A DNA stretch of 64,000 bases, taken from positions 3,472,001 to 3,536,000 of the forward strand of contig NC_047065.1 in the NCBI RefSeq assembly GCF_902459465.1, given 5' to 3'. Shown piece after piece: positions 12,201 through 53,300 of the stretch. Made by a program: the position numbers and the translations under genes. The DNA is from Asterias rubens. Lineage: Eukaryota. The notes under the pieces are model-generated. The model did not search any database and had not been told where the DNA came from. It saw only the letters and a list, made by a program, of their open reading frames with translations. Each line of letters starts with the position of its first letter. Within the stretch, counting starts at the first letter, position 1.

Positions 12201-13449
12201 TTATAGTGTCATAGAAAATATCACTACAAAAGGAGAGCAAAAGCAAAGTTTGCTTACCGATAAAAACAACTTTATGAAATGGTACTTTGGCTTGTAACTG
12301 GGCCCACTTCTTGAGCATACAGTTTTGCTTAACGATGTTGTGCTTAGCAAACAAATTAACAGGATACCATTCAGAAATGGTGCATGTGACAAGGTATTTT
12401 GGCTGGTAACTTTATTCTGGTAAGTATAAGTTTGTAGTGCTTAGCTACCTTTGTGTTGTTTTATTCTTATTTTTTTAAATAATTTTTTTTAATGTGTCTT
12501 GTGTTTTGTGATCCAGATTACGATCTCTAGGATCAGCAGCCCTGAATATGTGTCAGGTAGCGAGGGGTGGAGGGGACGTTTACTTTGAGCATGGTATCCA
12601 CTGCTGGGACATGGCTGCTGGTGCTGTCATCGTAACGGAGGCTGGTGGAACAGTCATCGACCCAAAAGGTAAGAGATTACAATTGGACTATTATTAGAAC
12701 TACAAAAAACCTCATGCATAAAACTACTGAAACCTCAGCACAACTAAAGGCACTGGACACTATTGGCAATTACTCAAAAAAACTTACTTGGTAACAAGCA
12801 ATGGAGAGCAGTTGATAGTACAAAACATTGTGAGAAACGACTCCCTTTGAAGTAACGTATAGTTTTCGAGAAAGAAGTTATTTTCCACTAAAATATTTGA
12901 ACTTGATTTGGAGACCTCAGAATTCGATTTTCAGGTCTGAAATCAAGCATCTGAAAGCACACAACTTCAGGTGACAAGGGTGTTTTTTCTTCCATTATTA
13001 TCTCGCAACTGCGACGACCAATTGAGTTCAAATTTTCACAGGTTTGTTATTTTGTGCATATGTTGAGATACACCAAGTGAGAAGACTGGTCTTTGACAAT
13101 TACCAAAGGTGTCCAGTGTCTTTAACGGAGTAATTGAAAAACAGTAGCAGGCCTAGCGACTGGACTAATGATTTAATAGTTGTGACTATGACACTAGTCG
13201 CATTAGTCGCCCAGGGCTTCTCGGTATTAACTTCACTACCGCGGAGTGAGTTCTTAATTGTTCTCACTGTTTTGACAAGCTTGCTCCAGTCATTGTCAGG
13301 CGACTGAATTATTTATCAATTGCAATTGTTTTTTCACTGTAGGTGGGCCGCTCGATTTGATGAAGCGAAATGTAATAGCAGCAAGTTCTCAACAACTAGC
13401 AGAAACTATATCATCATGTCTAACCCACATAGAGTTCCCCAGGGACTAG
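9276..13449 (+). CDS. IMPA1: Inositol monophosphatase 1-like
   Basis: Exons 9276-9362, 10791-10924, 11156-11260, 11379-11533, 12077-12185, 12517-12668, 13343-13449, all phase-compatible. Motifs [38 protein letters not shown] and CWDMAAG are present. Confidence 0.96.
10497..10600 (+). mobile_element. tRNA-derived SINE head
   Basis: TAGCTCAGTTGGTAGAGC (A box) and GGTTCAAATCC (B box), but the acceptor stem does not pair; related copies at about 4310-4395 and 40010-40065. Confidence 0.65.
11928..12000 (+). pseudogene. Degenerate duplicate of the 5' part of IMPA1 exon 5 (pseudo-exon)
   Basis: CCAG|ATATCTGTAAACAGTGTTTAGCCATTGCTGAGTTGGGAAGCAGTCTCGAATAAAGCTCATGTCAAGACCAA versus the real CCAG|ATATTTGTAAATGTTTAGCCATTGCTGAGGTGGGAAGCAGTCGCGATAAAGCCCACGTCAAGACCAA. 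Confidence 0.85.
12744..13125. mobile_element. MITE family A copy
   Basis: Same TIRs and body as 4403-4789, opposite orientation. Confidence 0.8.
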
Positions 13450-13701: not shown

Positions 13702-14078
13702 TAAATGACACTATTGGTAATTGTCAAAGACCAGTCTTCTCACTTGGTGTATCTCAACGTATGCATCAAATCTGTGAAATTTTGAGCTCAATTGGTCATT
13801 GAAGTTGCAAGATAATAATGAAAGAAAAAACACTCTTGTCACACGAAGTTGTGTGCTTTCAGATGCTTGATTTCGAGACCTCAAATTATAAATCTGAGGT
13901 CTAGAAATCAAATTCATGAAAATTACTTCTTTCTTCAAAACTATGTTTGTTACTTCAGAAGGAGCCGTTTTTCACAATGTTTTATTGGATATCAACCTCT
14001 CCCCATTACTCGTTACCAAGTGAGGTTTTACGCTAATAATTATTTTGAGTAATTACCAATAGTGTCCACTGCCTTTAA
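13702..14078. mobile_element. MITE family A copy
   Basis: Left TIR slightly deleted, right TIR intact. Confidence 0.8.
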
Positions 14079-16439: not shown

Positions 16440-16826
16440 TTAAAGACAGTGGACACTATTGGTAATTGTCAAAGACCAGTCTTCTCACTTGGTGTATCTC
16501 AATATATGCATAAAATAACAAACCTGTGAAAATTTGAGCTCAATTGGTCGTCAAAGTTGCGAGATTATAATGAAAGAAAAAAAGGCCCTAGTCACATGAA
16601 GTTATGTGCTTTCAGATGCTTGATTTTGTGACCTCAAATTCTAAATCTGAGGTCTCAAAATCAAATTCGTGGAAAGTTACTTCTTTCTCGAAAACTACAT
16701 CACTTCAGAGGGAGCTGTTTCTCGCAATGTTTTATACTAGCAACCTCTCCCCATTACTCGTTACCAAGTGAGGTTTTATGCAAATAATTATTTGAAGAAA
16801 CTACCAATAGTGTCCACTGCCTTTAA
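16440..16826. mobile_element. MITE family A copy
   Basis: TIRs and body as at 4403-4789. Confidence 0.8.
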
Positions 16827-29580: not shown

Positions 29581-32500
29581 TCACATGACCCTGATGAGGT
29601 GAGGATTGCGGTCTTTCTCATATTTTACGGTTCCTGTCTCCAGTCGTTGAGTTCTGATGCATTCTGCGATGCGCTTGTAGGTTGCAGTCTGTTGAATAGA
29701 CTAAAATATTACACTCCAAATATTGACTGATTCATTCAACATCATGGAAATCCATATGCAAAAACACGCCATGGCCCAGTCTACGGGTCGAGCATAAGGT
29801 TTGGAAGGTAGTGCATTCTGCTCTACCAACCAGGCCTCCTAGTGGATGATACCCATGCCTACATCCTTACAGACTGTGAAGGGGGTATAACCCAGTGTCG
29901 GCCCCAGGAGTAGGTGCCAACGTGTCCTGGTGACAGTTGATTTGGATTTATAGCCGAAGTGTACCCCTCACTTTGAAGTTTTGATTTATTTATCTTTTAT
30001 TAAAAGGACTAACAACCACCCAGAGTCATCTCTCAGAGACTGCTGTAAACTGCTATAAACACTTTACACACACATCCTGTAACCTACCTTTGGGTTTAGC
30101 ACGGAGACAACGTCTGTGACAGGTAACAGTTTCCCATGACGAGGATTGGCGGTGAAATAACGCTTACCCTTAATCACGCCATCAGTATCACCGACTGGAA
30201 GAGGTATAAATGAGTATAACAATAACAATCATTAAAATACAAAAATATTATTATACACAATCTGGGAATAAATGTATATAGCGTAAAATCCATCAGTAAA
30301 AATGCTCCCTGTGGGATTGATTTTAAAAAGATAGTCCTAACTTAGGACTAGTCCTAGGAGATATTAAAAACTGAAGGCTAGGTCTAAGTTAGGACAAGCA
30401 ACTCGTCCTAACTTGAGATAAGGCTAGTCTTAACTAGGCTAGTCTTGAAATGCACCACTTGACTTGATTTGACAAAGGAAGTCCTAACATAGGAATAGCC
30501 TTAGTTCTTTACCAACTCCTAGGACTAGTCCTAAGTTACGACTATATTTAATAAATCGACCATTGCTCACTAAAACCAATAAGCAGCCACTCCCTCCCTC
30601 CACCCGACCACCGGTTGGTCCAAACAATTAATTGAATTGCTGTACTGACCTGCCTCATCTAGTCTGATGCCTGTATACAGCCGATGATCATTGTGGTGAA
30701 ATTCCTTGTCCACCTTGCCGACAAACTTTACAACTCCGGTCAAGATGGCCCCTTTTCTCCTCCCACCTGTAGTAGTAGAAGTATGTACAGTAGTTAATAC
30801 GTTGAGAATGGAGAGCGGGTCAAAAGGTCACTGAATTATCTGCAGTAACAACATTACTTATTAAAGGCAGTGGACACTATTGGTAATTACTCAAAATAAT
30901 TATTGGCATAAAACCTTTCTTGCTGACGAGTAATGGGGAGAGGTTGATGGTATAAAACATCGTGAGAAACGGCTCCCTCTGAAGAAGTAATTTTCCACGA
31001 ATTTGATTTCAAGACCTCAAGTTTAGAACTTGAGGTCTCGAGATCAACCATCTAAACGCACACAATTTCGTGTTGCAAGGGTTATTTTTCTTTCATTATT
31101 CTCTCGCAACTTCGATGACCGATTGAGCTCAAATTTTCACAGGTTTGTTATTTTATGCATATGTTGAGATACACCAACTGTGAAGGCTAGTCTTTGACAA
31201 TTACCAATAGTGTCCACTGCCTTTAACCTATTCAGCACATAACACTATAGACCTTAGAAATAACAAATACTTTGAAATGTTTGGTATTGTACGGAATCAG
31301 GAGCTGCAAAAGTAAAATTTTACAGGTGAGTCTATAAGCCTATTCGGAGTTCCAGCTGCGCATGTCTGTTACTGCTGACAACGCAATTTGTTGCTCTCCC
31401 GTGACATTTTGACAATACCAGCGAGTATTGTCGAAAGGTCACTAGAGAGCAAAAAATTGCGTTGTCAGCAGTAACAGATATGCGCAGCTGGAACTCCGAA
31501 TCGACTTATTGAGACTAATGACACTCTGGTCTCAAAACACTCATACTGATAAGGACCAATTTTGCACTTCATTTTGTTTGTGGGGGGAAGTATGTTTAAA
31601 CATAATTCAAAAGATTGTGGAGTTTGCAAGAAAGATATCGTTGTTCAAGAAGGAGGAGAGAAATACTGGAGAAATATAGTTTGAGGAGAATGGGAGGTAG
31701 TAGGAAGTTTTCTCTGCCAAATCACAAACCTTTCTTCTTCACACGCACTCTGTCTCCCACTCGGAGACACTGGGCCACCAGAAAGTCATCCTCAAACATC
31801 ACTGTCCCTTTCTGCATAATGGAAGCTCCCTCAGTCTCCAATCGTGCCATGGACGACTTGGGTCTGAGGTGTGTACCATTCTTCAATGTAGGGTTGGCAG
31901 ACCGTGAGGTGGGTGCGTAAGAGCCTTCTGGGGTGTACAAGTCGTATATTGTAGGCATGCCGTCTTCGGCACTGCCTTGTTTGTGTAGGAGTCGTAGAAA
32001 GCTTCCGTTTGATGTGTTCAGGGAAGTGACCAGGCTGCCTTCGCTTTCCGGAGTATCGAGTCGTTGATAGTCCTCGAGCTTTGGCTGTTTGCAATCTGAT
32101 TGGCTACCGCTGCTACTACTGCTGTCATATGGAGGAGTGCCAACATCTAGCTGAGTACTGTTGTATGTGAGCTGGTGAGGGTGGAAGTATACATTCAGGA
32201 ATAATGTTTAAAAAGTCTGCAGTGTTTCTTTTATTGATTTACATAGACTTATGTTCAAGTTGTTATTGTCGTCATATGGAGGGGTGACATTATCTAGCCG
32301 AGTACTGTTGTATGTAAGCTGGTGAGGGGTGTATTGCTTAAAGTCAGTGGACACTATTGGTAATTGTCAAAGACTAGCTTTCACAGTTGGTGTATCTCAA
32401 CATATGCATAAAATAACAAACCTGTGAAAATTTGAACTCAATCGCTCATCGAACTTGCGGAATATTAATGTAAGAAAAAAACACCCTTATCACACGAACT

Positions 32501-35500
32501 TGTGTATGTTTAGATGGTTGATTTCGAGACCTCAAGTTCTAAATCTGAGGTCTTGAAATCAAATTCGTGGAAAATTACTTCTTTCTCGAAAACTATGGCA
32601 CTTCAGAGGGTGCTGTTTCTCGCAATGTTTTATACCATCAACCTCTCCCCATTACTCGTTACCAAGAAAGGTTTTACGGTAACAATTATTTTGAGTAATT
32701 ACCAATAGTGTCCACTGCCTTTAAAGTGTCTGCATATATAGACTTGTGGACAAGTAGTATTGTAGTGATAGCGTAATAATGTAGTACACTGTCGCTAGCT
32801 CTCGCCATCTTAGAGGTAAAACAATTACACAATGGTAAATGCTCATCTATGTATGCACATGATGGACCAAAAAGAGCAACCTTTTTTACTTTTGGTCCAA
32901 GGCGCCCTACTTATATGAAGTCTTGTGCATAAGATCTATTGCATGCGTGTAATCAGAATCAAAAGAAAAGGCAGTTTGTGAACGTAAAAACAATTCGCAC
33001 AACTAGTCATAGCATTTGCCATCGAATGGACGAACAGTATTTATAACCTTTTTCCCCTCTATATAAATGATGCAGTCTGCTCACCTTGGACCGTCTTGAC
33101 TGTGCTCCAACTTGAATGCCCTTAGAAGGTCTTCTGCAAATAATGACAAGCAGTTTGTCAAGAAGAATTGTTGTTAATTTGTTACGATTAACTGCGACAA
33201 AGATATCTAAATCTGCACGCTTCAAAATACATCTCAGTTTAATGTAAATAAATCAGTGACCAATACTAATATCCTAAGTTTCAATATGGATTTGGGTCAC
33301 CGCATAACAAGAATTTCAATATCAATAATAAAATAATGAAGAATTTGTTTACTGCTGTCGCTTACCTTTTTTGAAGCCTCACGATTCTAAAGTTTGTGCC
33401 ATTGGTCGGACCACCATTCCTCCAACCAATCCCCTGTGACTTGTTCTCCGAATCCACCCACGTCTCTCCATGGTCTGTTTCCAGTCTCTCCTTCACAGTA
33501 TCCAGCTCATGGGACTTCTGCATCACCAGACTATCTTTGCCTACGATCAACTGCTTTAGGGTGTAAATCTCGCACTTGGCGATGTCAAGTTCTTTTTCAG
33601 TTGCGTGGAGTTTGGCGAGCTCCGCCTCGAGGCCCTTGATCTTGGTTTTGTTTTCACCATTGACTCGTCTTGTTAGAATCAGGACGGCGTTCCTCTCCTC
33701 GAGACGTTTCTCGCAAACTTGGAGGGTTTCTTTCTTTTCGTCCAACTCCTTCTGAAGTGGCGGCAACTTCTTCAATTCCTGAATGTTGTAAAAAAGGGAA
33801 AATGTCAAAAATAAATTGCATTAAAAACACGGAGAATGCTAAGCTCAATTGTCATCTGTGTCTTCTGTGCACACCTTGTATGTCAGCTGTGGACATCTCG
33901 TGGTACATGCCTGTTCAGAAGATTATCCAGGGCCCAATTTCATAGAGCTGCTAAGCACAAAAATTTGCTTAGCATGAAATTTCTTCCTTGATAAAAACAG
34001 GATTACCAGCCAAATTTTCATTTGTGTCATATTGCTTGTTACTGGTATTCAGCTGTTGTGTGCTCATCCTGAAAACCGTGTGGAGATTTGGTTGGTAATC
34101 CTGTTTTTATTGAGGCAGAAATTTCATGCTAAGCAAATTTTTGTGCTTAGCAGCTCTATGAAATTGGGCCCTGATCATCAACGAATGGAAAAGCCTGCCT
34201 ACATACATGTATATTGGTTTTGAAAGCCCGGCCTTCTATGCAATCTGGGGTGTTCCATTTGGTTTTATCTTCATTTTCTGAGGAGAAAATGCACTTGCTT
34301 CAAACGGTTGCTCAACTTCCTGGAAAATTATCACACAGAGTAGGAAAGTCATGAACACCATGGCACTTGAGACTTACCAGTTCCATCCTCTCATTGCGTT
34401 TTCCTTCATATCTGAGCTGTTGATGTAGATCAGCAATCGCCGCTTTGCCGTTGTCGACCCGTGACTCACACTCGCTCAACTGCTTGTTCAAATCCTCAAT
34501 TTTGGTCTGATGGTCCACAATCTCCAGCTCACGATCTCGTACTGCACCCCTGGTGATTTTTAAACAAAAATGCTCCTTTTTTGAGTGAACTGTCTTCACG
34601 TGAAGATGAGCAGAGCATAGGCTAAGGTTGGAAGCATCAAGTCTCAACTTTATCTTGTTCTTTTATTTTGGGTTCCTTATAAGTTTTCCATTGGAAGAGT
34701 GTCAAATACGATCAGGTTTGACACTCTCTTAGAATGAGGCTAGAGATTAAAATATTTTTCACAATTTCATAAGGACCCTATCGTTTCGAAAATGGGTGCA
34801 TCACAAAACTTAATTTTGTCTTTGAGCCCCTCTTTAAAAAACCAACACTCCTACCCGAAGGCGATTTATTCCCAAGACTGTCACCTGTAAACCTTCTTAG
34901 TCCTCTTCACATAAAATGCTTTTCTGGATTGCGCACACTTGAAGGTATACATCTAATACAAGTACTCTTTATCTTTCAAAGTTTTAACATCTCACTCTTT
35001 CTCTTCTGACACACAACTTTTTTAATTAAATTTCTGCGATGAGAACGGTTCTTACTGGCAGTTTCTGAGAACGTCTCTCATGGATTCCAGATTGGCCTCT
35101 GTTCTTTCTGCTTCAGCCACTGAAAGAGAAGAAACATTGAGATTAAAATTGTTATTTAATTATACTTTTTTGTAATGAAACACAGGACGCCTGACAAGAC
35201 CAGGACTCAAACCCACACTCTGCTGATCAAAAACACCAGAGCACGAGTCAGTGCTTTTTACTGGTCACCAGCCTCGAATGTCCCACTATCAAAGACAAAG
35301 CAATTATGGTAAAGTATTTTAGGCGCCAAGACCTGGACTCAAACCCACACTCTGCTGATCAAAAACACCAGAGCATGAGTCAGTGTTTTTTACTGGTCAG
35401 CCTCGTCTAGCAATATAGATTGTCCTTATATTATGTACCTCTTTCTTCAAGCTGCTCAATCTTGTACTTCAGTTTAGTAATCTCCTTGTCCTTGGCATCA

Positions 35501-38500
35501 AGAAATATACCCTTCTTTTCACTCTGCAAAGCAAATTGATACAAGAAGAGACATCTTATTTTCAATTACAATTGTCTTATTTTAAATCACAAAATTACAG
35601 GTTCGAACCCAGCTCTGGGAATTTTTTCTTCGTTCAACCCTAATGATGATGAGGTATATTATCTGCCATTGAACAATGGTAGCAATCCACACCAATGATG
35701 TCACTTGTGGTAAAAAAAACCTGGATGTCAGCAAAAACATTTCCCCATGGACTCATATCATCCAACTAAGCTTGGGCGATATCACGATATTATCGAATAT
35801 CGCGATACTAATTTGGAAACGATTTCGATATCGGATAAATTTGGTTCTAATCAAAATATAGATTAAATATTGCAATATCGTGATGTATTTCCTAGCTGAG
35901 ACATCTTGCACCCCATAGGTTTGGAGTAAAACCAGAAGAATAGGTCATTAGAACACCTATCTTAAGCTATGACTGTCTCTTCTACAACTTTCACTGGGAG
36001 TTTGAAGACTGATGATGTCAAATTTACTTAATCGCGATTATATCGAATATCGCGATATATTATCGGCAATATATCATGAATAACATAAATCGATATCGCC
36101 CAAGCTTACATCCAACACAGCATCAGCACCACATCGGCGCATCAGAATGCAGTAGCAGTATAGCCTACAGTACACATGAGTAAACATAAAGCCTGGGCCC
36201 AATTTCTTAAAGCCTGTAAGCACAAAAATTTGCTAAGCATTAAATTCTTCCTTGAAACAGGATACCAACCAAAATTCCACATGATTTTTAGGCTAAGCAA
36301 ACAACAGATGAACACCAGTAACAAGCAATTTCCATCAAAAATTAAAATTTGGTTGGTAATCCTGTTTTTAACGCAGAAGAAATTTCATCCTTACCAAATT
36401 TGTGTGCTTACAGGCTTTATGTCATTGGGCCCAAGACACATGTAACGCACTCATACATTGCAACAACATACATTGCAACAACAAACAGGAGAACAACTTA
36501 TACCTCTGCTCTACTCTTCTCATAAAGTCTTGTGACTTTCTGCAGCTCCCTGCAAGTGAAAGCATTCTCAGAACTCAAGGTGGTGTACTTTTCTTCAAAA
36601 TCCTAAGAAAAAGAACAAAGATGCCGAGCTGGATCAGTTGAAACAACACATGAACAAAAAGATTTTAAAAAACACAACACATCTCAAAAAGCTTTTCTAA
36701 AAAGGAACATTTTGATTTGGCCATAGGGAGATTGAGAAATGACAGTCAAATGCATACCGTCCGCAGAGCCGACTCCTTCTCAAGTTTTTCTTTGGTGACT
36801 TTGAGTTCTTCAGACGTCTTAAGGAGAACTTTGGCGGCGTCGTTTCTGTTTGAGATAACAAACAAATGCAATTAATTTCTAAGAACAAACTTTGTTGACT
36901 CTGTAAAAGGATCATTTTTGTCTTTCTTATTCACTAATTTATGTTGGATGGCGTATCAAAACTAAAATACATACCGACTGTTGTTGTTTATAAACTGATT
37001 TGTTTAGTGCCGAAATGCACTATAAAAACATTTTGTTATTATTCTTAAATCCACCAAATTTATCTTGAATGGTTTGGTGGACGGTTTGTAACAAACAACT
37101 TTGGATTATCGATCCCTCAACTTTTTGCTGGCAGCTTTGCCTCGTGAAATGAAGAAGTCCAGAAATCACCGTTGTGAATATATTCTGCGATATTGTACTC
37201 ATATTTATGTACAATAATTGCATAACATACCTGTGTTTGAGCTGGTGTTGCTGCATGGTGACGATATGATTTGGTGGATGCCTAAGACTCTGCCCGGTTC
37301 TCTTGTTAAACCAGAAAGCACCTACGTGCCGTGTGCACAAAAAAGTCCAATCGTCCTGTAGCAAGAAATATTATTTCATTAAAAACTATCCGAGTTGTGC
37401 AAATATATTACCTCATAACACTCCACGATCAACATTTTTATTCATGGTTTTTTAAAATTTGTCTTTGTGGCCAGAGGCAAAATTGCATCACATTGTACAT
37501 TATATCAAATGGGATTTTATATTGAAATTTTGGCTCCTGCAATCGTTGTCAAGAAAAACTCATTTAGGTTAGCAATTCGTCATAGTTTTCTAATAACATT
37601 TTGACAATAATAATGATAGTATCCATTTCTTGAAATTAATATCAATTTATCACACACGAGGGCATCTCAAAGCAGTTATTGTTTGTTGTACTTGGAGCTA
37701 GGTTTGGGATTAAACAATGATAAAGTATATAGCACCACAATTTATTAACACAAACAGAGCTCTAGACCAATTAATTGACCAAAAAAAAGTTTTTTAAATA
37801 CATTGTAATGGATTACAAATAACAGATCAATCTAAAAATGTATTATGTATCAATCAAGTGCTTTAAGTCATTGAGATACTGTGAGGTACTTACTTTGAGT
37901 ATTAGTCCAAGAGATAAACTTCGTGTCATTCAATTATTTAAAACAACCACTTCAGCTGGAATAAATACATTTCAGGTAAGTCCAACTGTGTGGTCCTGGG
38001 AGACAACGTTTATCTCAAATATTTACTCGCTAAACAATCAAAGTGTTGGTAAATATTTGGCGACTCCAAACGAAGTACCAGACACTTTCAAGGCATGGTA
38101 ACTTTTATGTGCTACTGAATGTATCACATATAAGTGCCTTAGCCACAAGAAACCCTAACCCAATCAATATCCCTCTTATTGGTTGCCAGGAAGTCTGCTG
38201 CCCTCTTTATGCTAATTAGCATAACAACCAACCAGTCAATACTCTGCTCATCATGTGACAAAGGATGTCTTTATCCAGGGGGTAAAGTGACTCTGTTGAA
38301 TTTTGAATGAGGTGCACAGCTTTGTTGGGGAAACTCAGGGACTTTTCTCTGTTCATTGTAACTGGATTTTCAAGGATAGTATTTAGCATGTTTAGCTGGA
38401 GGCTGTTGGACTATAACTGTCTGTGAGATCAGACTGGGGACAACAAGCTTTGTGAATGGGGACAGTTATGTGTAAATAAGCTATAAATCACATACTTGAG

Positions 38501-41500
38501 CTGTCCTGGCATACAGTTAGATTAATCCCAGAAAAATTGTACATTTTCAATTAAGAGCTTACTTAGTAAAACTACAAATCTTCTTGAGACATTTATTTCT
38601 ATTAAAATGGTTAAACTTTGTTCAAACCTGTGTTTGAATTTGAATGTTTATACATTGCCTGGTCAGCTAAAACAATAGCTAGTAAGTTACTAAAACAAAC
38701 ATAAACAAATATGAAGAAACAAAAACAGGCTTTACGGTTTATACTTTTCTTCTTTCTTTATGAAATGTTTTTTCTTTTTCTTATGCATCCTACACAACTG
38801 CAGTAAAATCTAAGAAGGAATAAAAGCTCTATTCACAGGAGAATATTTCAATGAAAATCAATCACCTTATTTTCAAAAAAGTTGTCCTTTTGCAACCAAA
38901 TTTTTATTTGCTACATGTTGATTGAATTAAGCACATGTGATTCAGGTCGTGATACTGAAAATCCCTGGTACCACATAAAGTTTCCCTTAGTTCAAGTTAT
39001 TACATGTTTTTCTGAACAATGTTATCACAATGTATTGATTGATGTTGACATGAAATAAATGTATCTGAAATGAACTTCAGCTCACCGTCATTGGGTCTCT
39101 AGCCGAGAAGACAGCCACTATCAGTCGTTTGGCTAGAGGAAGAAACTCACTGTAACACACGTTGGAAACCTTGCCTGCTTCACTATACACACAAAAACAT
39201 TACAGAACACTTAAAGACACTGGACACTATTGCTAATTGTCAAAGGCCAGTCTTTTCACTTTGTGCATCTCAACATATGCATACAACAACAAACCTTTTA
39301 AAATTTGAGCTCAATCGGTCGTCGAAGTTGCGAGATAGTAATTGAAGAAAAAACAAACTTGTCAAAAGAAGTTGTGTGCTTTCAGGTGCTTGATTTCAGG
39401 ACCTCAAATTCTAAATCTGAGGTCTCGAAATCAAATTCATGGAAAATTACTTCTTTCTCAAAAACTACGTTACTTCAGAGGGAGCCATTTCTCACAATGT
39501 TTTATACCGTCAACAGCTCCCCATTACTGGTTACCAAGGTTTTATGCTAATAATTATTTTGAGTAATTCCCAATAGTGTCAACTGCCTTTAAATTCTCAC
39601 CATTAGCTTGTTATTCTTACATTCAAATCTGTTTTAAAAGTTAAACAAGTGGCACGAGAATATTATGTGTGATATTTTTGTCCTTTCCCGATAGCAGGGG
39701 CTTTTAAAAAATCTTTATTAAACTGGGATACCATACTCCAATTAAGAATAATAATTAAATGACGACTTACTTTTTAAAATGTTTACTGATTTCAGAGATG
39801 TCTCTTTTGGTGAGAATGAGCCCAAAATCTTCTGAGTTGATGATCTGAAGAAAAAAAAAGAAAAAATAAAGACATTTTTATGAACAACAGTTGACAGTTA
39901 TGAAATTACACATGGATGTTGGAGGATGAGCCAAAGTTTGTTTTTATTTGGTTGCATGGTTGAAATTGAAAATGCAGTTACTTTGTTGTATATATTTGTA
40001 TAAGCATACAGTTGGTAGAGCACTTGAATGGTATTCAAGAGGTTGAAGGTTCGATTCCCAATTCTACTTAGCTACTCATCCAAAAGGGGAATTTAAAGTT
40101 GCAAACTGCTAACCTGCCAACAAATTGTTTCTGTCATTGACGTTTCTAAGATTGCATATTTCAATTACGAATTGTTCTGCCTGGGTGAACATAACCGATT
40201 TGGATTTTCAGCGATTTTTCAAAAAAAGTACCATCTTTTACAAAAAAAAATCACAGGTTGAGTTTTCGTTTTTACATAACAAAATCGCAGTTTCATAAAC
40301 CAATGTATACAATCCCTTAGTCTTTTTGACGGCCTTTTTTGATAATGACTTGCCAGGGTCCAAACATAAGGCCACCAACAATGTTTGCGTCTGTGATATA
40401 TACACTTACTCTGATGAAATCATTGAGATTGATCCTGCCATCTTTATTCATGTCTGCCGTTTCCATGGCATCCCTCAAGGCATCCTCAAAGAGAAAAAGC
40501 TCCGGTTGGTTGTCATAGTCAACTGGTCTGTCTGACCTGAAAAAGGATCAAGCACAAAAAAATGTTTTTTTTAAATCACAGTAGGTTTGTGGGTTAATTA
40601 TTGTATGCACATGAAACAAAAAAGAAAAAACATTAACTTTCATACATTTTTGGGACAATGGTTTTTATTACATCCCAAATTACCTCTTTCTCTAAAACTG
40701 CCTTGTTTTAAATGCGGAACAAAGTTGTTTAATATCAACAGCTCTCCAGTGCTTTTACCAAGTAACTTTATGCTACTTAATTTGTGTAATTACCCAAGGA
40801 GAACCCTCATTTCGAAACAAAATATTAACTAATCTTGTTGACCCATTACACCATGCACCACACGCAGCAACTGGCAAGGGGACGTCTGTCATGCTCGCCA
40901 TTTTGGTAGTCAAGTTGCACAAAGCATGTTAATGCCGGGCCACCTAAATTGCACACTACACACAGGGACATTGACTCAAAAAAAAGATGCAACCAAGAAT
41001 ATTGTGATGATGAAGTCACTTAAAATCAGTCAATAGAGGTTTAAATGAAATTACCTACCGAACGGTTCCTGTGTGTTTGTTGAAGTAGTAGGGTGGTGAA
41101 TCCTTCCCTCTATCAAGAATGCTCCAGGGATTCTGAAATATTAAGAGATATAGATTATCAAAGTTGAAGTCTAAAGTTCAATTCCAAGGAATAACTTCCA
41201 AATCAGTCAGCGAGCAACTTTAGAATTTAAAGGCAATGGACACTATTGGTAATTACTCAAAATAATTATTAGCATAAAACCTTACTTGGTAACAAGTAAT
41301 GGGGAGAGGTTGATAGTATAAAACATTGTGAGAAATGGCTCCCTCTAAAGTGACGTAGTTTTTCGAGAAAGAAGTAATTTTCCACAAATTTGATTTTGAG
41401 ACCTCAGAATTAGATTTTGAGGTCTCAAAATCAAGCATCTGAAAGCACACAACTTCGTGTGACGAGGGTGTTTCTTCTTTCATCATTATCTCGCAACTTC

Positions 41501-44289
41501 GAAGACAAATTCAGCTCAAATTTTCACAGGTTTGTTATTTAATGCATATGTTGAGATACACAAAGTGAGAAGACTCGTCTTTGACAATTACCAATAGTGT
41601 CCAGTGTCTTTAAACCAATGTTTGTCTGAGAGAGATTGGCTGTTGTAAGCTTTTGTGTTTATATTCCCTAATGGGAGTTTGCAGAGTTCTCTTGACGGGT
41701 AGATAATCTAAACAAGCAAAGAACTGACAAAATCTCACCCTTGAGTTTGAATCCTCCTTGTTGTAGAACAGCATCAGCAAATACTTTGCCAGAGGGAGAA
41801 ACTCATCGAATGATACAGGCAAATCCTATTAAGTAAATTAAAAAACAGAATTATCAAATACATAACAGAAGTATCAAACTCACAACAATAGATCTGATGC
41901 ACATGACATCATTTTTATCAAGTTCAAAGTCAAAAGAAGGTTGCTTATCAGCTTATTGGCCCACCGTGGCACAACTTCCAGATTTTGTCGTGCACAAATT
42001 TTTCACAAAGAACCATTATAAAAGTATCAAAATTTTTATTATATGCATTTTATTAGATTTTCTTTCAAAAAAATGTATTAAACTTTACACAAATTTGAAC
42101 AAATGGGTCTGTAGATTGCAAAAAGAAAAAATTTTTGTCAGTCAATATTACTAAAAAAGGAGCATTAAACAAGTCATAACTTTTTTAAAGTCTATTTGGT
42201 GCATATAACAAAACTTTATTTCTGTTTCTATAATTACCTTAATGTCTTTCCGTCCGCCACTGCAATCCTTCTCCAGTTTTCTTATGTCTTCCGCAGACAG
42301 TTCAAGTTCTAATGATGGTGACTTCAGAACCTAAACAGAACATGCAAATGCTTAAATTAACCAATTTACTCTTGATGCTTTCTGGATTCGGTCGGAAATT
42401 AGTGAAAACTTGAAGACCTACAATTCTGTCAAAAATTCATGTAGCACTTTATAAGGGTTTACAAGGTCGATTGGCAGCTAACTTGGCAGCCACTGCCAAA
42501 AAAACCGGAGCAAATCCCTTCCTCTTACAAATGTCTTAGTGTTGAAGGGTTCTTCAACATGTATTACACAATAAACATGACCTAAGGCTTTATGTCTCGT
42601 CCAGAGGATGAAGCAATAATAGTAAAGTGTCTGGCTTCAGGACACAAGGTCAAGACTGTAACTCAAACCAATACTCTTCAGGGTAATAAGCAAAAAAATT
42701 TGCTTCGCATGAAATTTCTTCCTTGATAAAAACAGGATTACCAACCAAATTTCCATTTGTTGCATATTGCTCGTTACAGGTATTCAGCTGTTGTTTGCTT
42801 ATCCCAAAATCACGTGGGAATTTGGTTGGTAATCCTCTATGAAATTGGGCCCTGGTGAGAAACACCAGCAGGCCATAATGGGAGACTTTTGGACAGTCCT
42901 TTTATACAGTTCTTGCCAGGTGTGTGTGGTACCGACCATTATTTCTGCTGCCATCAGGGTCTCAAGAGTCTCCCCTTAGCCTTTTTGAGGTATGATGGAC
43001 ACTATAGGAGTGCACTGTTTGGTTTGGGTGCATACATACAAGTTTACCCAAACCGGATAGTGTCTTATGAATGTGTTCACCAAAACTCAAAATGGATTAA
43101 TGTCAGCATATTAAGTTATACTCACCGAGGTGAACTCTGCTCGCCTAAGCCTTTTATCACTATCCACATCGGCGCTGTCAAACACCACGAAGGCCAGCTC
43201 CTTGAAGGGATCCTCAAAGCGTCTCGCTTGGCGGCTGAGCAGCCTCGGAGACTTTCCAGACTTCTTGCTGCCGCGACGAGGCCTATCATACGACCACTCG
43301 TCGTCATCCTCCTCCATCCAGACGGTGGGCCTGAGTTTGACCTTGGGGAGCTTAGCGAAAGGGTCAGCGCACACCTTACGGGATGCCTTGCGCCTCTTCT
43401 TCGGGGCTGGTTGATTGGCAGGAGGAGGACTTGGGGTCAAATCTTCACCTGATGTATTGCTGGTTGCCATGGCAACTAAAGATTTTGTAACAAATTTGAA
43501 AAATTGTCAGTTGTAGATGGAAAAAAAATTAAAATAAGTTTGATTTTGTCCCAATATAGCTCAGATGGAAAAAAAAAAATCCTAGATCAACTGCAGATTT
43601 GTTGTTAAATCATACATAAAAAGATATTGCAGATTTTATCCAAAGTGAAAAAGTGAAATACCTCTCTCGGCTGCTAAATCTCCTTCAAGAACCAGTTCGT
43701 CTTCAGTGGTGTCCTGCAGAAGTAAATTGAACAATCCCTGACTTTGATGATTTGGCTGAAAATTACCCTTTGGCGCAGTGGAAGAGTCCGCTAAATCACC
43801 AGGAGATGATCTTGTTGTGCTCAACTCATTACAGTCATCAGCGGAAGGTTCCACACTATGAGGGTAGATATTTTGGAAAGTTTTTGCATCATCACCTTTT
43901 GAAGGATGACCCCCACAGCACATCCTTGACCTTGGTCTCACCTCAGGGTTTTGGGTATCTAAGGAATTATTGTCCCTGAGTTTCAAAGCATTGTCATTTT
44001 GAGCTGTTTCATTAGTCATTCCGAACCGTGAAGTTGAACTTTGACCTGAAGTGGTATCCTTAAGGTCAGGGGTCAACTCATTAAAGTCCATATCTGAGTC
44101 TCTCACAGACAGAGTTGAAAGTTTCTTCCCAACAATTTTTGGCCTTTCACCACGCTCACTTCTAATCTTTCCAGGACTCTGATTGGCTGGGTCTTGCATT
44201 GTATCCATGGCTCTGACTCGTTCATTTTGAGGCGTGCCATCATTCAGATGACTGATGATTGGTTCCCTCCTGAATGCTGAAGCCATCAT
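29581..44289 (-). CDS. Uncharacterised multidomain protein: 2x(EF-hand pair + WW-like), coiled coil, C-terminal CAP-Gly; about 1129 aa
   Basis: 20 GT-AG exons: 44289-43662, 43475-43126, 42330-42238, 41825-41739, 41132-41059, 40536-40410, 39844-39771, 39182-39086, 37355-37231, 36845-36758, 36602-36504, 35523-35439, 35119-35056, 34549-34378, 33778-33366, 33133-33085, 32150-31730, 30766-30650, 30194-30088, 29700-29581. Lengths sum to 3390 nt with every phase compatible and no internal stop. The start codon is uncertain (see findings). Confidence 0.85.
30860..31226. mobile_element. MITE family A copy
   Basis: Full TIRs with TTAA flanks. Confidence 0.8.
31327..31515. repeat. Palindromic element (about 70 bp arms), probable MITE
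   Basis: TTCGGAGTTCCAGCTGCGCATGTCTGTTACTGCTGACAACGCAATT is mirrored by AATTGCGTTGTCAGCAGTAACAGATATGCGCAGCTGGAACTCCGAA. Confidence 0.8.
32338..32724. mobile_element. MITE family A copy
   Basis: TIRs and body as at 4403-4789. Confidence 0.8.
33928..34173. mobile_element. GGGCCC-ended palindromic MITE family
   Basis: CAGGGCCCAATTTCATAGAGCTGCTAAGCACAAAAATTTGCTTAGCATGAAATTT...mirror...GGGCCCTG. Other copies at 36195-36432, 51731-51971, 42670-42853 (partial) and 47198-47260 (partial); related ends at 18055-18296, 49335-49440 and 3293-3470. Confidence 0.8.
35768..36107. mobile_element. MITE with AAGCTTGGGCGATAT TIRs
   Basis: AAGCTTGGGCGATATC ... GATATCGCCCAAGCTT with multiple subterminal CGATAT/ATATCG repeats. 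Confidence 0.75.
39211..39591. mobile_element. MITE family A copy
   Basis: TIRs and body as at 4403-4789. Confidence 0.8.
41227..41613. mobile_element. MITE family A copy
   Basis: TIRs and body as at 4403-4789, opposite orientation. Confidence 0.8.
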
Positions 44290-50327: not shown

Positions 50328-53300
50328 TCACTTGGTGACTTCGTGCATGGCATGGGCCAAGTAGGCGTTGTTCTTAGATGAGATACCGGCGACGGAGATT
50401 CGACCGTCTTTCGTCAGGTAGACCGAGAAATCCTTGGTGATCTTCTCCACCTGAAAAGGAAGTTGAAATAATTGCATGCAGCCCGAAAAAAAAACACACG
50501 AAATAGACTAATTGCATTAAAGGCAGCGGACACTATTGGTAATTACTCAAAATAATTATCAGCATAAAACCTTACTTGGTAACGAGTAATGGAGACAGGT
50601 TGATAGTATAAAACATTGTAAGGAACGGCTCCCTCAGAAGTGACGTAGTTTTCGAGAAAGAAGTTATTTCCACGTATTTGATTTTGAGACCTCAAGTTTA
50701 GAATTGATTGAAGTGTCGAAATCAACCATCTGAAAGCACACATCTTCGTGTGACAAGGGTGTTTTTTTCTTCCATTATCTCGCGACTTCAACGACCAATT
50801 GAGCTCAAATTTTCACAGGTTTGTTATTTTATGCATATATGATGAGATACACCAAATGAGAAGATTGGCCTTTGACAATTACCAATAGTGTCCACTGCCT
50901 TTAAAGGTAAGGTCATACTTTGATATTAAGGTTTAACAAAAAATAATGACCATAAAGACTTACTTAGTGGTAAGCACTGTACATGGCTGTTGGGTTAAAC
51001 TAATTTGAAAAAAGGATTCCCATGGTAAAGTATGGTTTGCACAAATATTTACCCAACAATTTTGTCATCTTAGGAACGATTCATGCACAAATCATTTCTT
51101 AGATTTCTGTAGGTGGCTGTCTGATCATGAATGCTGTGGCCAGAGAGATGCAGTTGGTGCCCTGCTATCATCTCGCTTAATGTGCGTAGATTTGTCGATC
51201 TTGTAAAAATACTGTCAAACTTTTTGCTGATTTCTCAGCAGGTAACTATGGTGTTTAGCTGAAACTTTCACATAACAAGCCCCCTTGGTCCACAGGTATG
51301 GCTTGCAAGCTACAGTGTATAAGTTCATGTATGAGGCATCCTTCTGGTTCCGTGACCAGAAATAAAACGACTTACTCAATTGAACATTCACGACTGCTCA
51401 ATTTAAGTCATTCTCATTAAACACACCCATATTATTTATATTGAATATCTTTGTCGCACCAATACTCTATTGTCATTATGGCATAACAGTAAAGAGTATT
51501 CTTCAACATATTGTAAACTTAATAAAATACCAAACTTCTTATTTTTAAAAGAGTTGTATCAAGCGGAGTGCTAGCTCAGGTTAGCTACCAAACGAAAAAC
51601 CCTAATCCTGATCTAAATGATGGGACACCAACGCTGCTTCGTACTTGTCAACAAACGTGTTAATGATAAAACGGGTTATGACTTGTTATGCCTCCAGTTG
51701 AGGATATTGCCTCCGTGAAGCATACAGCCTGGGCCCAATTTCGTAGAGCTGCTAAGCACGAAAATTTGCTTAGCATGAAATTTCTTCTCATTAACAACAG
51801 GATTACCAACCAAATTTCCATGTGATTTTCAGGATAAGCAAACAACAGCTGATTACCAGTAACAAGCAATATGCAACAAATGGAAATTTTGTAGGTAATC
51901 CTGTTTTTATCAAGAGAGAAATTTCATGCTAAGAAAATTTTTGTGCTTAACAGCTCTATGAAGTTGGGCCCTGGTGTACATGTAGTAAGGTGCTTCAAAT
52001 GTTACATTTGTTCAACAGGGCCTAATAATAATATGAATAACAAATGCTTATATAGCACATTTTACAATAATCGTATCAAGGCGTTACATTAGTGCCCTGG
52101 TGTTTTGGCCAATAACATTCTGAAAATCTTGTTCAGCTCCCTTGGGGTATACAGGCTGGGCTATCATGGCTCTCCAAAAGCTTTTTTGTACAAAGTATCA
52201 ACCTATGCCCTCGCAGGTATCCATTTATAGTAAAGCATCGTGCTTGAGGGCACAACCAAGTTTTACAACCAAGATTCAAACCGCACTTTGATGCCTTAAC
52301 TACCAGAACTTAAATTTGATGCCCTAAACTACTCGGCCATGACAACCAAATCAAGGTTCTATTTTCATTCAAATAGGGGAGGGGGGCTAAAGGGGTACTC
52401 CATCCTAATATAAACATGAACATACCTGGTCCGGTTTGAGTCCAGTGAAGCAGAACATGCCGATCTGATCAGTGATGTGTGACCAGTCCCGGGTAGACCC
52501 TTCCTTAGTCAGGTTAGCTACCAGATGGTCTCGCATTGTGATGATACGACCAGACATCAACTCTAACTCCTTCTTCCTGAAAATTAATTGAATGATCAAC
52601 TTTTTAAGCTAATTATAAGCCCCTACTGTTCTCCAAGTGGACCAACCAATTCAAACCCATCCAATGGGGACTTTGGAACACTAGGATGGCAGCAGACTTA
52701 CCAGGTAAAGTAGTTCTAAGTAGGCAGACATTATCGATTACACAGTATTTGATAACACAGTATTTCCAGAAAAAAAAAGTCCCCCATAGCAAGGGTTGTG
52801 TATGGTGAAACTACTGTGTACAGAACGAACTAACTAACTGTGTGCTTGTATGTACTGACATAGATGCAATGACTACATATCATTTTGCACATGCTGGCAC
52901 CATTCAAAACCACAGTTGAAATTAAGTGGTCAGATAGTAGGAGGGTTAACTGTAGATGTACTAACCCCATGATATCATATTGCAGGCTGTTAACCACTCA
53001 AAACCACAGAGGATGAAATTGAATGGTCAGGTAGTTAAGGAACATTAAAAGTGTGCTGTGAAGATGCATTAACCACCAGGTATCATACTGCAGATTGGTC
53101 TTTAGCTTATCTACCATTCAAAACCATTGCAGTCAGATAGAAGGGGGTTAAAGACACTGGACACTATTGGTAATTGTCAAAGACCAGTCTCCTCACTTGG
53201 TGTATCTCAACATATGCATAACAAAATAAACCTGGGAAAATTTGAGCTCAATTGGTCGTCGAAGTTTTGAGATAATAATGGAAGGAAAAACACCCATCAC

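Follow-up and report, generated by a model that had tools for sequence, protein, structure and literature searches.

The minus strand of a 64,000-nucleotide stretch of the Asterias rubens genome (contig NC_047065.1, positions 3,472,001 to 3,536,000; hereafter the window, within which all positions are numbered) raises the question of what is encoded between positions 29581 and 44289, where a reading made from the sequence alone had described an unrecognised 20-exon gene for a candidate Ca2+-sensing microtubule adaptor. The answer reached here is that the gene at this locus is annotated yet unstudied, and is not a new kind of system: its domains are known ones, their architecture is new, and its CAP-Gly domain diverges systematically. 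With moderate confidence, its product is considered a Ca2+-responsive cytoskeletal or motor-linked adaptor, a parallel dimer with a non-canonical CAP-Gly domain that belongs to an uncharacterised but conserved invertebrate family.

When open segments bounded by AG and GT are chained by phase, the 20 exons form a single open frame of 1129 amino acids (aa), running from an ATG at 44289 to a TGA stop at 29583-29581. All 20 exons are bounded by canonical GT-AG splice sites, and the region is AT-rich (GC ~0.38). This independent rebuild reproduces exactly the exon number and protein length of the sequence-only reading, whose quoted motifs are all present in the minus-strand translation, and it is identical to the RefSeq protein XP_033626611.1 at 1102 of 1105 positions. 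The description of the gene as unrecognised did not survive: it is already annotated in RefSeq as LOC117289563, and the family has gene models in at least 15 other invertebrate species. The family itself is uncharacterised, and XP_033626611.1 is named "uncharacterized protein". The start codons differ, with the RefSeq protein beginning at Met28 of the 1129-aa model (position 44208), whereas the Asterias amurensis orthologue XP_071785521 (1131 aa, 95% identical) begins at MMASAF, as the 1129-aa model does. The coding part of exon 1 (43662-44289, donor gt at 43661), which opens with this MMASAF, is identical to XP_033626611.1 and 95% identical to XP_071785521. The exon 3 acceptor (42330), which differs by 9 nt from the first-choice acceptor and adds VLK, was fixed by XP_033626611.1 and Patiria miniata LOC119738570. 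In XP_033626611.1 numbering, which is used for all residues below, the protein comprises a disordered N-terminus, two modules that each pair two EF-hands with a WW unit (EF-WW modules), a coiled coil, a Ser/Thr/Pro-rich linker, the CAP-Gly domain and a short conserved tail. A search of the whole A. rubens assembly with the EF-WW module recovered only the LOC117289563 locus and no paralogue.

Whether the EF-WW half and the CAP-Gly half belong together is answered by Logan transcript contigs from four public runs; such contigs give no expression levels. A 3623-nt spliced contig from one run carries, in order, 37355-37231, 36845-36758, 36602-36504, 35523-35439, 34549-34378, 33778-33366 and 32171-31730, spanning the second WW exon, the coiled coil, the linker and the first CAP-Gly strand. 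Two stretches of it, 65 and 49 nt long, do not align and fit the exons at 35119-35056 and 33133-33085, and the bin depths agree. Beyond the aligned exons the contig has another 1848 nt on the 5' side and 235 nt on the 3' side, leaving room for the whole EF-WW half and the remaining CAP-Gly exons, and contigs of 1836 nt and 1704 nt in two further runs have the same junctions. Since a single spliced contig runs from the second WW exon into the first CAP-Gly exon, the two halves form one mRNA and one 20-exon gene, as the sequence-only reading had held when it proposed tandem EF-pair/WW-like modules, a coiled coil, a Ser-rich linker and a C-terminal CAP-Gly domain in one gene. Pfam run on single exons recovered only one EF-hand and the CAP-Gly domain; the WW unit and the first EF-hand were missed because introns split those domains. 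Short family members without EF/WW in molluscs, a hemichordate and a crinoid, together with Lingula, where RefSeq models each half separately, on different scaffolds (vide infra), would fit a different explanation, namely that two neighbouring genes, one EF/WW and one coiled-coil/CAP-Gly, have been wrongly joined, or that the frame is a chance one. This is extremely improbable given the exact GT-AG junctions seen in three runs, the presence of both halves in RefSeq models of six echinoderm species and a nemertean, and a 2885-nt transcript contig from another organism (P0060) whose single 919-aa open reading frame (ORF) carries the full architecture. For A. rubens the two-gene reading is refuted by the spliced contig.

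The family was assembled with phmmer, using exon 15 (33366-33778; 413 nt, encoding coiled coil and its end, and present in the transcript contig) as a query against 1.84 billion representatives, plus a follow-up search. The exon found P. miniata LOC119738570, at 68% identity over its length, and the follow-up search recovered XP_033626611.1. Word-indexed protein searches returned three to six relatives each, coiled-coil words having saturated the candidates, and little weight is placed on them for taxonomic range. The full order of two EF-WW modules, coiled coil and CAP-Gly domain is common to the two Asterias species (XP_071785521 in A. amurensis), P. miniata (LOC119738570), Amphiura filiformis (XP_072013862), two Lytechinus species (LOC121408310 and LOC129254485), Diadema antillarum and the nemertean Tubulanus polymorphus (LOC141914435). 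It is probably also present in a brachiopod, in an older merged Lingula model. That model (MetaClust UPI00078A155F, 1397 aa) contains an exact internal coiled-coil repeat of ~150 aa (ALETRHSNLQVKYEAACLELQ...), probably an artefact of assembly or haplotypes; the current RefSeq Lingula entries are LOC106175708 (640 aa) and a partial LOC106177984 (EF-WW), on different scaffolds.

Shorter members of 570-780 aa, with the coiled coil and CAP-Gly domain only, are found in Ptychodera, Antedon, oysters, Pecten, Haliotis, Aplysia, Lymnaea and others. At the Ptychodera flava and Magallana gigas loci, tblastn found no EF-WW exons in the gene or its 10-kb flanks, and these short forms are not obvious annotation truncations. 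The reverse arrangement is seen in the sponge Oscarella pearsei, in which EP00118_P018106 (1147 aa) has two EF-WW modules at residues 378-632 between coiled-coil and disordered flanks, and lacks a CAP-Gly domain. These searches, which used one coiled-coil exon and word-indexed look-ups, brought up no member from chordates, arthropods, nematodes or cnidarians; with so narrow a scope this does not show absence. Family members are named in databases either "uncharacterized" or after coiled-coil artefacts (myosin, reticulocyte-binding protein, CCDC186-like). Literature searches found no paper on the architecture or on the locus and accession identifiers of the family, and the gene did not turn out to be the orthologue of a characterised one.

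The two modules occupy residues 262-520, and in each a WW-fold domain comes after the EF-hand pair. In the first, the EF-hand 1 loop DVDSDKRLRRAE lies on exon 2 (43126-43475; acceptor tctttag followed by TT, phase 1), its exit helix and the degenerate EF2 loop VLKSPSLELELSAEDIRKLEKDCSGGRKDIK on exon 3 (42238-42330), the EF2 exit helix (...SFDEFLPLAKYLLMLFYNKEDSNSR; helix 75-93 of the AlphaFold2 (AF2) model) on exon 4 (41739-41825), and WW-like domain 1 NPWSILDRGKDSPPYYFNKHTGTV, with a weak Pfam WW match of 13.9 bits, on exon 5 (41059-41132). In the second, exon 6 (40410-40536) encodes EF-hand 3 with its loop DMNKDGRINLND (EF-hand_1 expectation value, E, 7.4e-5 on the exon alone), exon 7 (39771-39844) the EF3 exit helix and the start of EF4 IINSEDFGLILTKRDISEISKHFK, exon 8 (39086-39182) the degenerate EF4 and its exit helix (...YSEFLPLAKRLIVAVFSARDPMT), and exon 9 (37231-37355), which is in the transcript contig, WW-like domain 2 (DDWTFLCTRHVGAFWFNKRTGQSLRHPP...). 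The modules are mutually homologous (local score 107 vs 30.8 +/- 6.0 for shuffles, z = 12.8, much more than chance would give) and have introns at equivalent positions, exon 7 being the counterpart of exon 3, which marks them as a block of exons that was duplicated in tandem long ago.

The AF2 model of the two modules (predicted local distance difference test score, pLDDT, 76) places four helices in each, forming the EF-hand pair, and then three short strands. Pfam EF-hand_7 (PF13499) scores 31.8 bits on residues 275-341 against a cut-off of 30, EF-hand_1 (PF00036) scores 28.8 bits on residues 255-520 and 25.5 on the whole protein against a cut-off of 25.4, and EF-hand profiles match seven of seven orthologous modules. 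Compared with the canonical 12-residue loop (D1, D/N3, D/N5, G6, E/D12), EF1 has the ligands D1/D3/D5/E12 reported by the sequence-only reading and a Lys at position 6 (Gly in urchin, Lingula and sponge), EF3 is canonical save for an Asp at position 12, and the EF2 and EF4 loops are degenerate.

The best match of the EF region among solved sequences is Chlamydomonas radial spoke protein 7 (RSP7; E 2.6e-6), followed by Tetrahymena RIB57. RSP7 (PDB 7jtk_M) has repeated EF-hand pairs of the same sub-type, F..AD.D....L.R.EF..(V/I)L....L.LS..(D)I......D......EFLP, but it also has an RIIa domain and is without WW, long coiled coil or CAP-Gly, the similarity being confined to the EF pairs. These matches, a weak similarity of the coiled coil to Lebercilin (E 5e-4, below cut-off) and the restriction of the members found to marine invertebrates whose larvae are ciliated and whose sperm are spawned freely could point to a structural protein of the axoneme or basal body in such larvae and sperm, with the EF pairs as axonemal Ca2+ sensors. 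That interpretation is rather unlikely, since the EF matches are generic, Foldseek and the Foldseek-independent VIA giving solely generic four-EF-hand proteins for the two-module model (calmodulin-like, centrin and troponin C equally), and since the taxon list is the product of one narrow search.

For the WW-like segment, Pfam WW gives weak matches in four of seven orthologues (best E 0.0013), and when a family WW profile was compared with PDB sequences, every WW match was sub-threshold, among noise from desmogleins and porins. An AF2 model of WW-like domain 2 by itself, made with 16 family sequences, has a pLDDT of 84. The 50 top Foldseek matches of this model in the PDB are all WW domains (Pin1, FBP28, KIBRA, FE65 and SAV1; template modelling (TM) scores 0.54-0.71), as are the top 16 from VIA, the best being FBP11 WW1 (Z 4.0, root-mean-square deviation (rmsd) 1.9 A over 30 residues); for so small a domain, E and Z values stay modest. 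Across 16 aligned units the first Trp never varies and the C-terminal Pro is found in at least 90%, at canonical spacing. The units are thus predicted to adopt the WW fold, a three-stranded antiparallel sheet, so this part of the sequence-only reading stands at the level of prediction. Its expectation of Pro-rich binding is unsafe: the second Trp, which in WW domains forms the proline-binding groove, is Ser in WW1 and Leu in WW2, varies across the family, and is kept only in WW1 of the divergent homologue P0060. Because the ligand-binding Trp is absent, the units probably do not read PPxY but cap the EF pairs structurally or give them an atypical surface for binding.

A physical coupling of WW to an EF-hand pair is also known from dystrophin and utrophin, in which the order is WW then EF; in dystrophin both Trp residues of the WW domain are retained, and the domain binds PPxY. 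The starfish order is the opposite, and dystrophin and utrophin were not among the Foldseek or VIA structural matches of the EF-WW model. Starfish, nemertean, brachiopod and sponge all conserve the EF-WW module, in which Trp, Gly and Pro are invariant. Structural matches in the AlphaFold DB include A9USB8 (residues 583-827, E 2.9e-12) and F2UN71 (residues 368-493; 31% identity, rmsd 4.9 A over 131 residues), the latter named "kinesin-like protein"; from their accession prefixes both are presumably choanoflagellate proteins. A feature search of the ESM Atlas was uninformative (scores <=0.84). The EF-hand-pair/WW unit appears to be a previously undescribed, mobile, pre-bilaterian module that is found outside the CAP-Gly family too.

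The other end of the protein is carried by the last five exons. A linker of ~175 aa (residues 801-975), rich in Ser, Thr, Pro and Gly, retains the conserved islands FLRLL and PTIYDLYxPxGxY. Its basic part RPSKGIQVGAQSRRSK is encoded by the 49-nt exon 16 (33085-33133), the sole AG..GT 49-mer in 33037-33227, which matches the 49-nt contig gap and the depth. Exon 17 (31730-32171) carries the Ser-rich linker with FLRLL and PTIYDLYTPEGSY, and the first CAP-Gly strand, VGDRVRVKKK. Exon 18 (30650-30766) encodes the middle of the CAP-Gly domain, GVVKFVGKVDKEFHHNDHRLYTGIRLDEA (CAP_GLY profile positions 11-36), and exon 19 (30088-30194) the segment with GDTDG in place of GKNDG, VGDTDGVIKGKRYFTANPRHGK... 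(28.5 bits, profile positions 36-65). Exon 20 (29581-29688) encodes the conserved C-terminal tail TATYKRIAECIRTQRLETGTVKYEKDRNPHLIRVM and the TGA stop; this tail, residues 1064-1105, is conserved in ambulacrarians (echinoderms and the hemichordate).

Taken whole, the CAP-Gly domain (Pfam PF01302, residues 986-1063) scores 52.7 bits against a cut-off of 26.5, and its nearest solved relative is the second CAP-Gly domain of CLIP-170 (Restin; E about 1e-9; PDB 2cp6, 2e4h and 2e3h). GDRV, GVVxFxG, LDE, G..DG, RYF and P..G are retained relative to that domain, and the structural core and the aromatic pocket are kept. The starfish domain differs in having GDTDG for GKNDG, in a five-residue insertion (the KEFHHNDHRL loop), and in being single and C-terminal, whereas those of CLIP-170 are tandem and N-terminal. 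The EF-WW modules are absent from the CLIP family, and the starfish tail ends in ...LIRVM, with no EEY tail and no zinc-knuckle match in Pfam. The tubulin cofactor TBCB (PDB 1whg, 1lpl and 4b6m), whose CAP-Gly domain is detected at E 5e-5 to 8e-5, has a layout in common with the starfish protein in that its C-terminal CAP-Gly domain is preceded by a coiled coil; unlike the starfish protein, TBCB is ~240 aa long with an N-terminal ubiquitin-like domain and a far shorter coil, has neither EF nor WW units, and shows no orthology.

A canonical plus-end or tubulin-tail binder resembling CLIP or p150, whose CAP-Gly domain would read EEY/F, with a Ca2+ switch through the EF-hands and Pro-rich cargo recruited by WW, is the form of adaptor to which several of these features would be suited: a bona fide CAP-Gly domain closest to CLIP-170 CAP-Gly 2, the predicted coiled-coil dimer, the EF-hand matches, the WW fold, and basic and Ser-rich regions flanking the CAP-Gly domain, as is generally known for the CLIPs and p150. 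It is nevertheless judged unlikely, as the second Trp is missing from both WW units and is not conserved, and on account of the GKNDG loop. This loop is G(D/E)(T/S)DG in every family protein retrieved; GMHDG stands in its place in two unrelated multi-CAP-Gly proteins that these searches also picked up. CAP-Gly domains "almost always" conserve GKNDG, TBCB having GK(N/H/G)DG, and the Asn of this motif hydrogen-bonds the EE[Y/F] tail (PMC3806363). The family-wide change of Lys to an acidic residue and of Asn to Thr or Ser would reverse the charge at the site for the acidic tail, and argues for a changed ligand, not for decay. Because Lys-Asn is replaced in this way in all members seen, the domain probably either has a ligand other than the canonical acidic EEY/F tail of alpha-tubulin, EB or CLIP or binds that tail in another way, and the tubulin- and EB-tail binding that the sequence-only reading took over from other CAP-Gly domains is unsafe here.

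Between the EF-WW modules and the linker, residues 516-800 are 41% charged, contain two Pro and are heptad-patterned, with a coiled coil of ~260-270 aa. It starts on exon 10 (36758-36845) and continues through exon 11 (36504-36602, where acceptor 36602 restores the frame), exon 12 (35439-35523), exon 13 (35056-35119; 64 nt, fitting the contig gap and the depth in bin 34947-35137) and exon 14 (34378-34549) into exon 15; exons 10, 11, 12 and 14 are in the transcript contig. Two copies modelled with ESMFold2 give a parallel in-register dimer, with i-to-i contacts at a spacing of 3-4 over residues 531-789. The interface score (ipSAE) is 0.48 against 0.00 for the best control, contact agreement between runs is at least 90%, and the partner pLDDT is 82 or more. 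When the tool was calibrated, 21 of 30 solved homodimers and 0 of 23 monomers attained the mark used for a dimer; the corresponding figures for eukaryotes were 17 of 29 and 0 of 30. The helical region is thus predicted to form a parallel in-register homodimer, which is supported, short of proof, and the dimeric state proposed by the sequence-only reading agrees with the prediction.

The N-terminal residues 1-261 are disordered, with 72% polar or charged residues, and include CCGGH and GLFxLLL(Q/T)D on exon 1 and a basic PKKRRK patch and DPF motifs on exon 2. Motifs at residues 94-100, 165-172 and 205-212 (window ~43990-44010, 43780-43800 and 43400-43420) are kept in this otherwise divergent region; CCGG(H), GLFxLLLxD and the PKKRRK-type patch are common to starfish and brittle star and partly to urchins, and DPF is likewise conserved among echinoderms. 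CCGG(H) is a possible dual-Cys lipidation site, and the basic patch resembles a nuclear localisation signal.

Brought together, these regions would make the dimer a rod-like scaffold. One end would display four EF-WW modules, each with an odd-numbered EF loop (D-x-D/N-x-D...E/D) that could bind Ca2+, and at the other end two CAP-Gly domains may dock onto the tail of a partner. A Ca2+-responsive cytoskeletal or motor-linked adaptor is the most likely role because of the CAP-Gly lineage, an EF sub-type closest to that of the flagellar RSP7, and the presence of the same module in a kinesin-like protein. Several points weigh against it. Ca2+ affinity is uncertain, given Lys6 of EF1, Asp12 of EF3 and the degenerate EF2 and EF4; the Pfam WW match of exon 5 does not reach the PF00397 cut-off (26.9 bits); and the dimer call is a prediction of a kind of structure, the coiled coil, that is easy for such models. 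A nuclear role would fit the PKKRRK patch just as well. Since molluscs, Ptychodera and a crinoid have members without them, the EF-WW modules are inessential to the core function. Finally, the function proposed for family members is inferential, every orthologue found being uncharacterised.

A bolder version of the adaptor may be drawn from the EF-hand dynein activating adaptors (Rab11-FIP3, CRACR2a, and ninein and ninein-like), which have one or more N-terminal EF pairs that bind the DLIC helix, a parallel dimeric coil of more than 200 aa and a C-terminal partner-binding domain. The starfish protein, with its predicted ~260-aa dimeric coil, matches this blueprint, a likeness in layout alone: no sequence relationship was detected (the Spindly/CC1-box was not searched systematically), and the C-terminal domains of those adaptors are Rab-binding or GTPase domains, not CAP-Gly. 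By this analogy, the EF-hand heads might engage a motor, as in these adaptors or in the kinesin-like protein with the EF-WW module, and the charge-reversed CAP-Gly domain might read a non-canonical tail or a tubulin state to which classical GKNDG domains are blind, in a Ca2+-gated motor/microtubule adaptor that was lost in vertebrates and ecdysozoans. So specific a scheme is considered quite improbable as a whole.

CAP-Gly proteins form a small, well-studied set (CLIPs, p150Glued, TBCB/E, CYLD, KIF13B and CEP350) whose shared logic is the reading of EEY/F through GKNDG. To these is added a further family, from echinoderms, hemichordates, molluscs, brachiopods and nemerteans, in which the fold is kept and two ligand-contacting residues are systematically altered, and which in several phyla couples CAP-Gly to the undescribed EF-hand-pair/WW module. 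Since the module is present in a sponge protein, it is older than the CAP-Gly family in question. If characterised, the family could widen the known CAP-Gly binding repertoire, and could reveal a Ca2+-linked cytoskeletal adaptor that is apparently lacking in the standard vertebrate, fly and worm models.

The introns of the gene, and the rest of the window, are rich in repeats. An element of ~365-390 bp resembling a miniature inverted-repeat transposable element (MITE), with 28-nt terminal inverted repeats TTAAAGGCAGTGGACACTATTGGTAATT, has four full copies in the introns (30861-31226, 32338-32724, 39211-39592 and 41227-41613), copies elsewhere at 4403-4789, 12744-13125, 16440-16826 and 50517-50904, and single ends at 14051, 15161, 53148 and 55440. 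Its repeat ends number 20 in the 64-kb window (0 expected), a pseudo-ORF with "...ENYFF..." recurs inside the copies, and sequence matching the element is hugely abundant in the transcriptome contigs, with a summed depth of about 10^6. A 65-nt direct duplication (32117-32181 and 32264-32328; 86% identity, 147 nt apart) copies the exon 17 acceptor and the first 55 nt of that exon into an unused pseudo-exon just upstream, adjoining a MITE-like insertion; the transcript contigs use the acceptor at 32171 only. A run of 316 N at 4885-5200 is an assembly gap or a masked stretch. Other high-copy interspersed repeats lie in introns at 33801-34182 and 35138-36474, with summed contig depths of 10^3 to 10^5 in all four runs.

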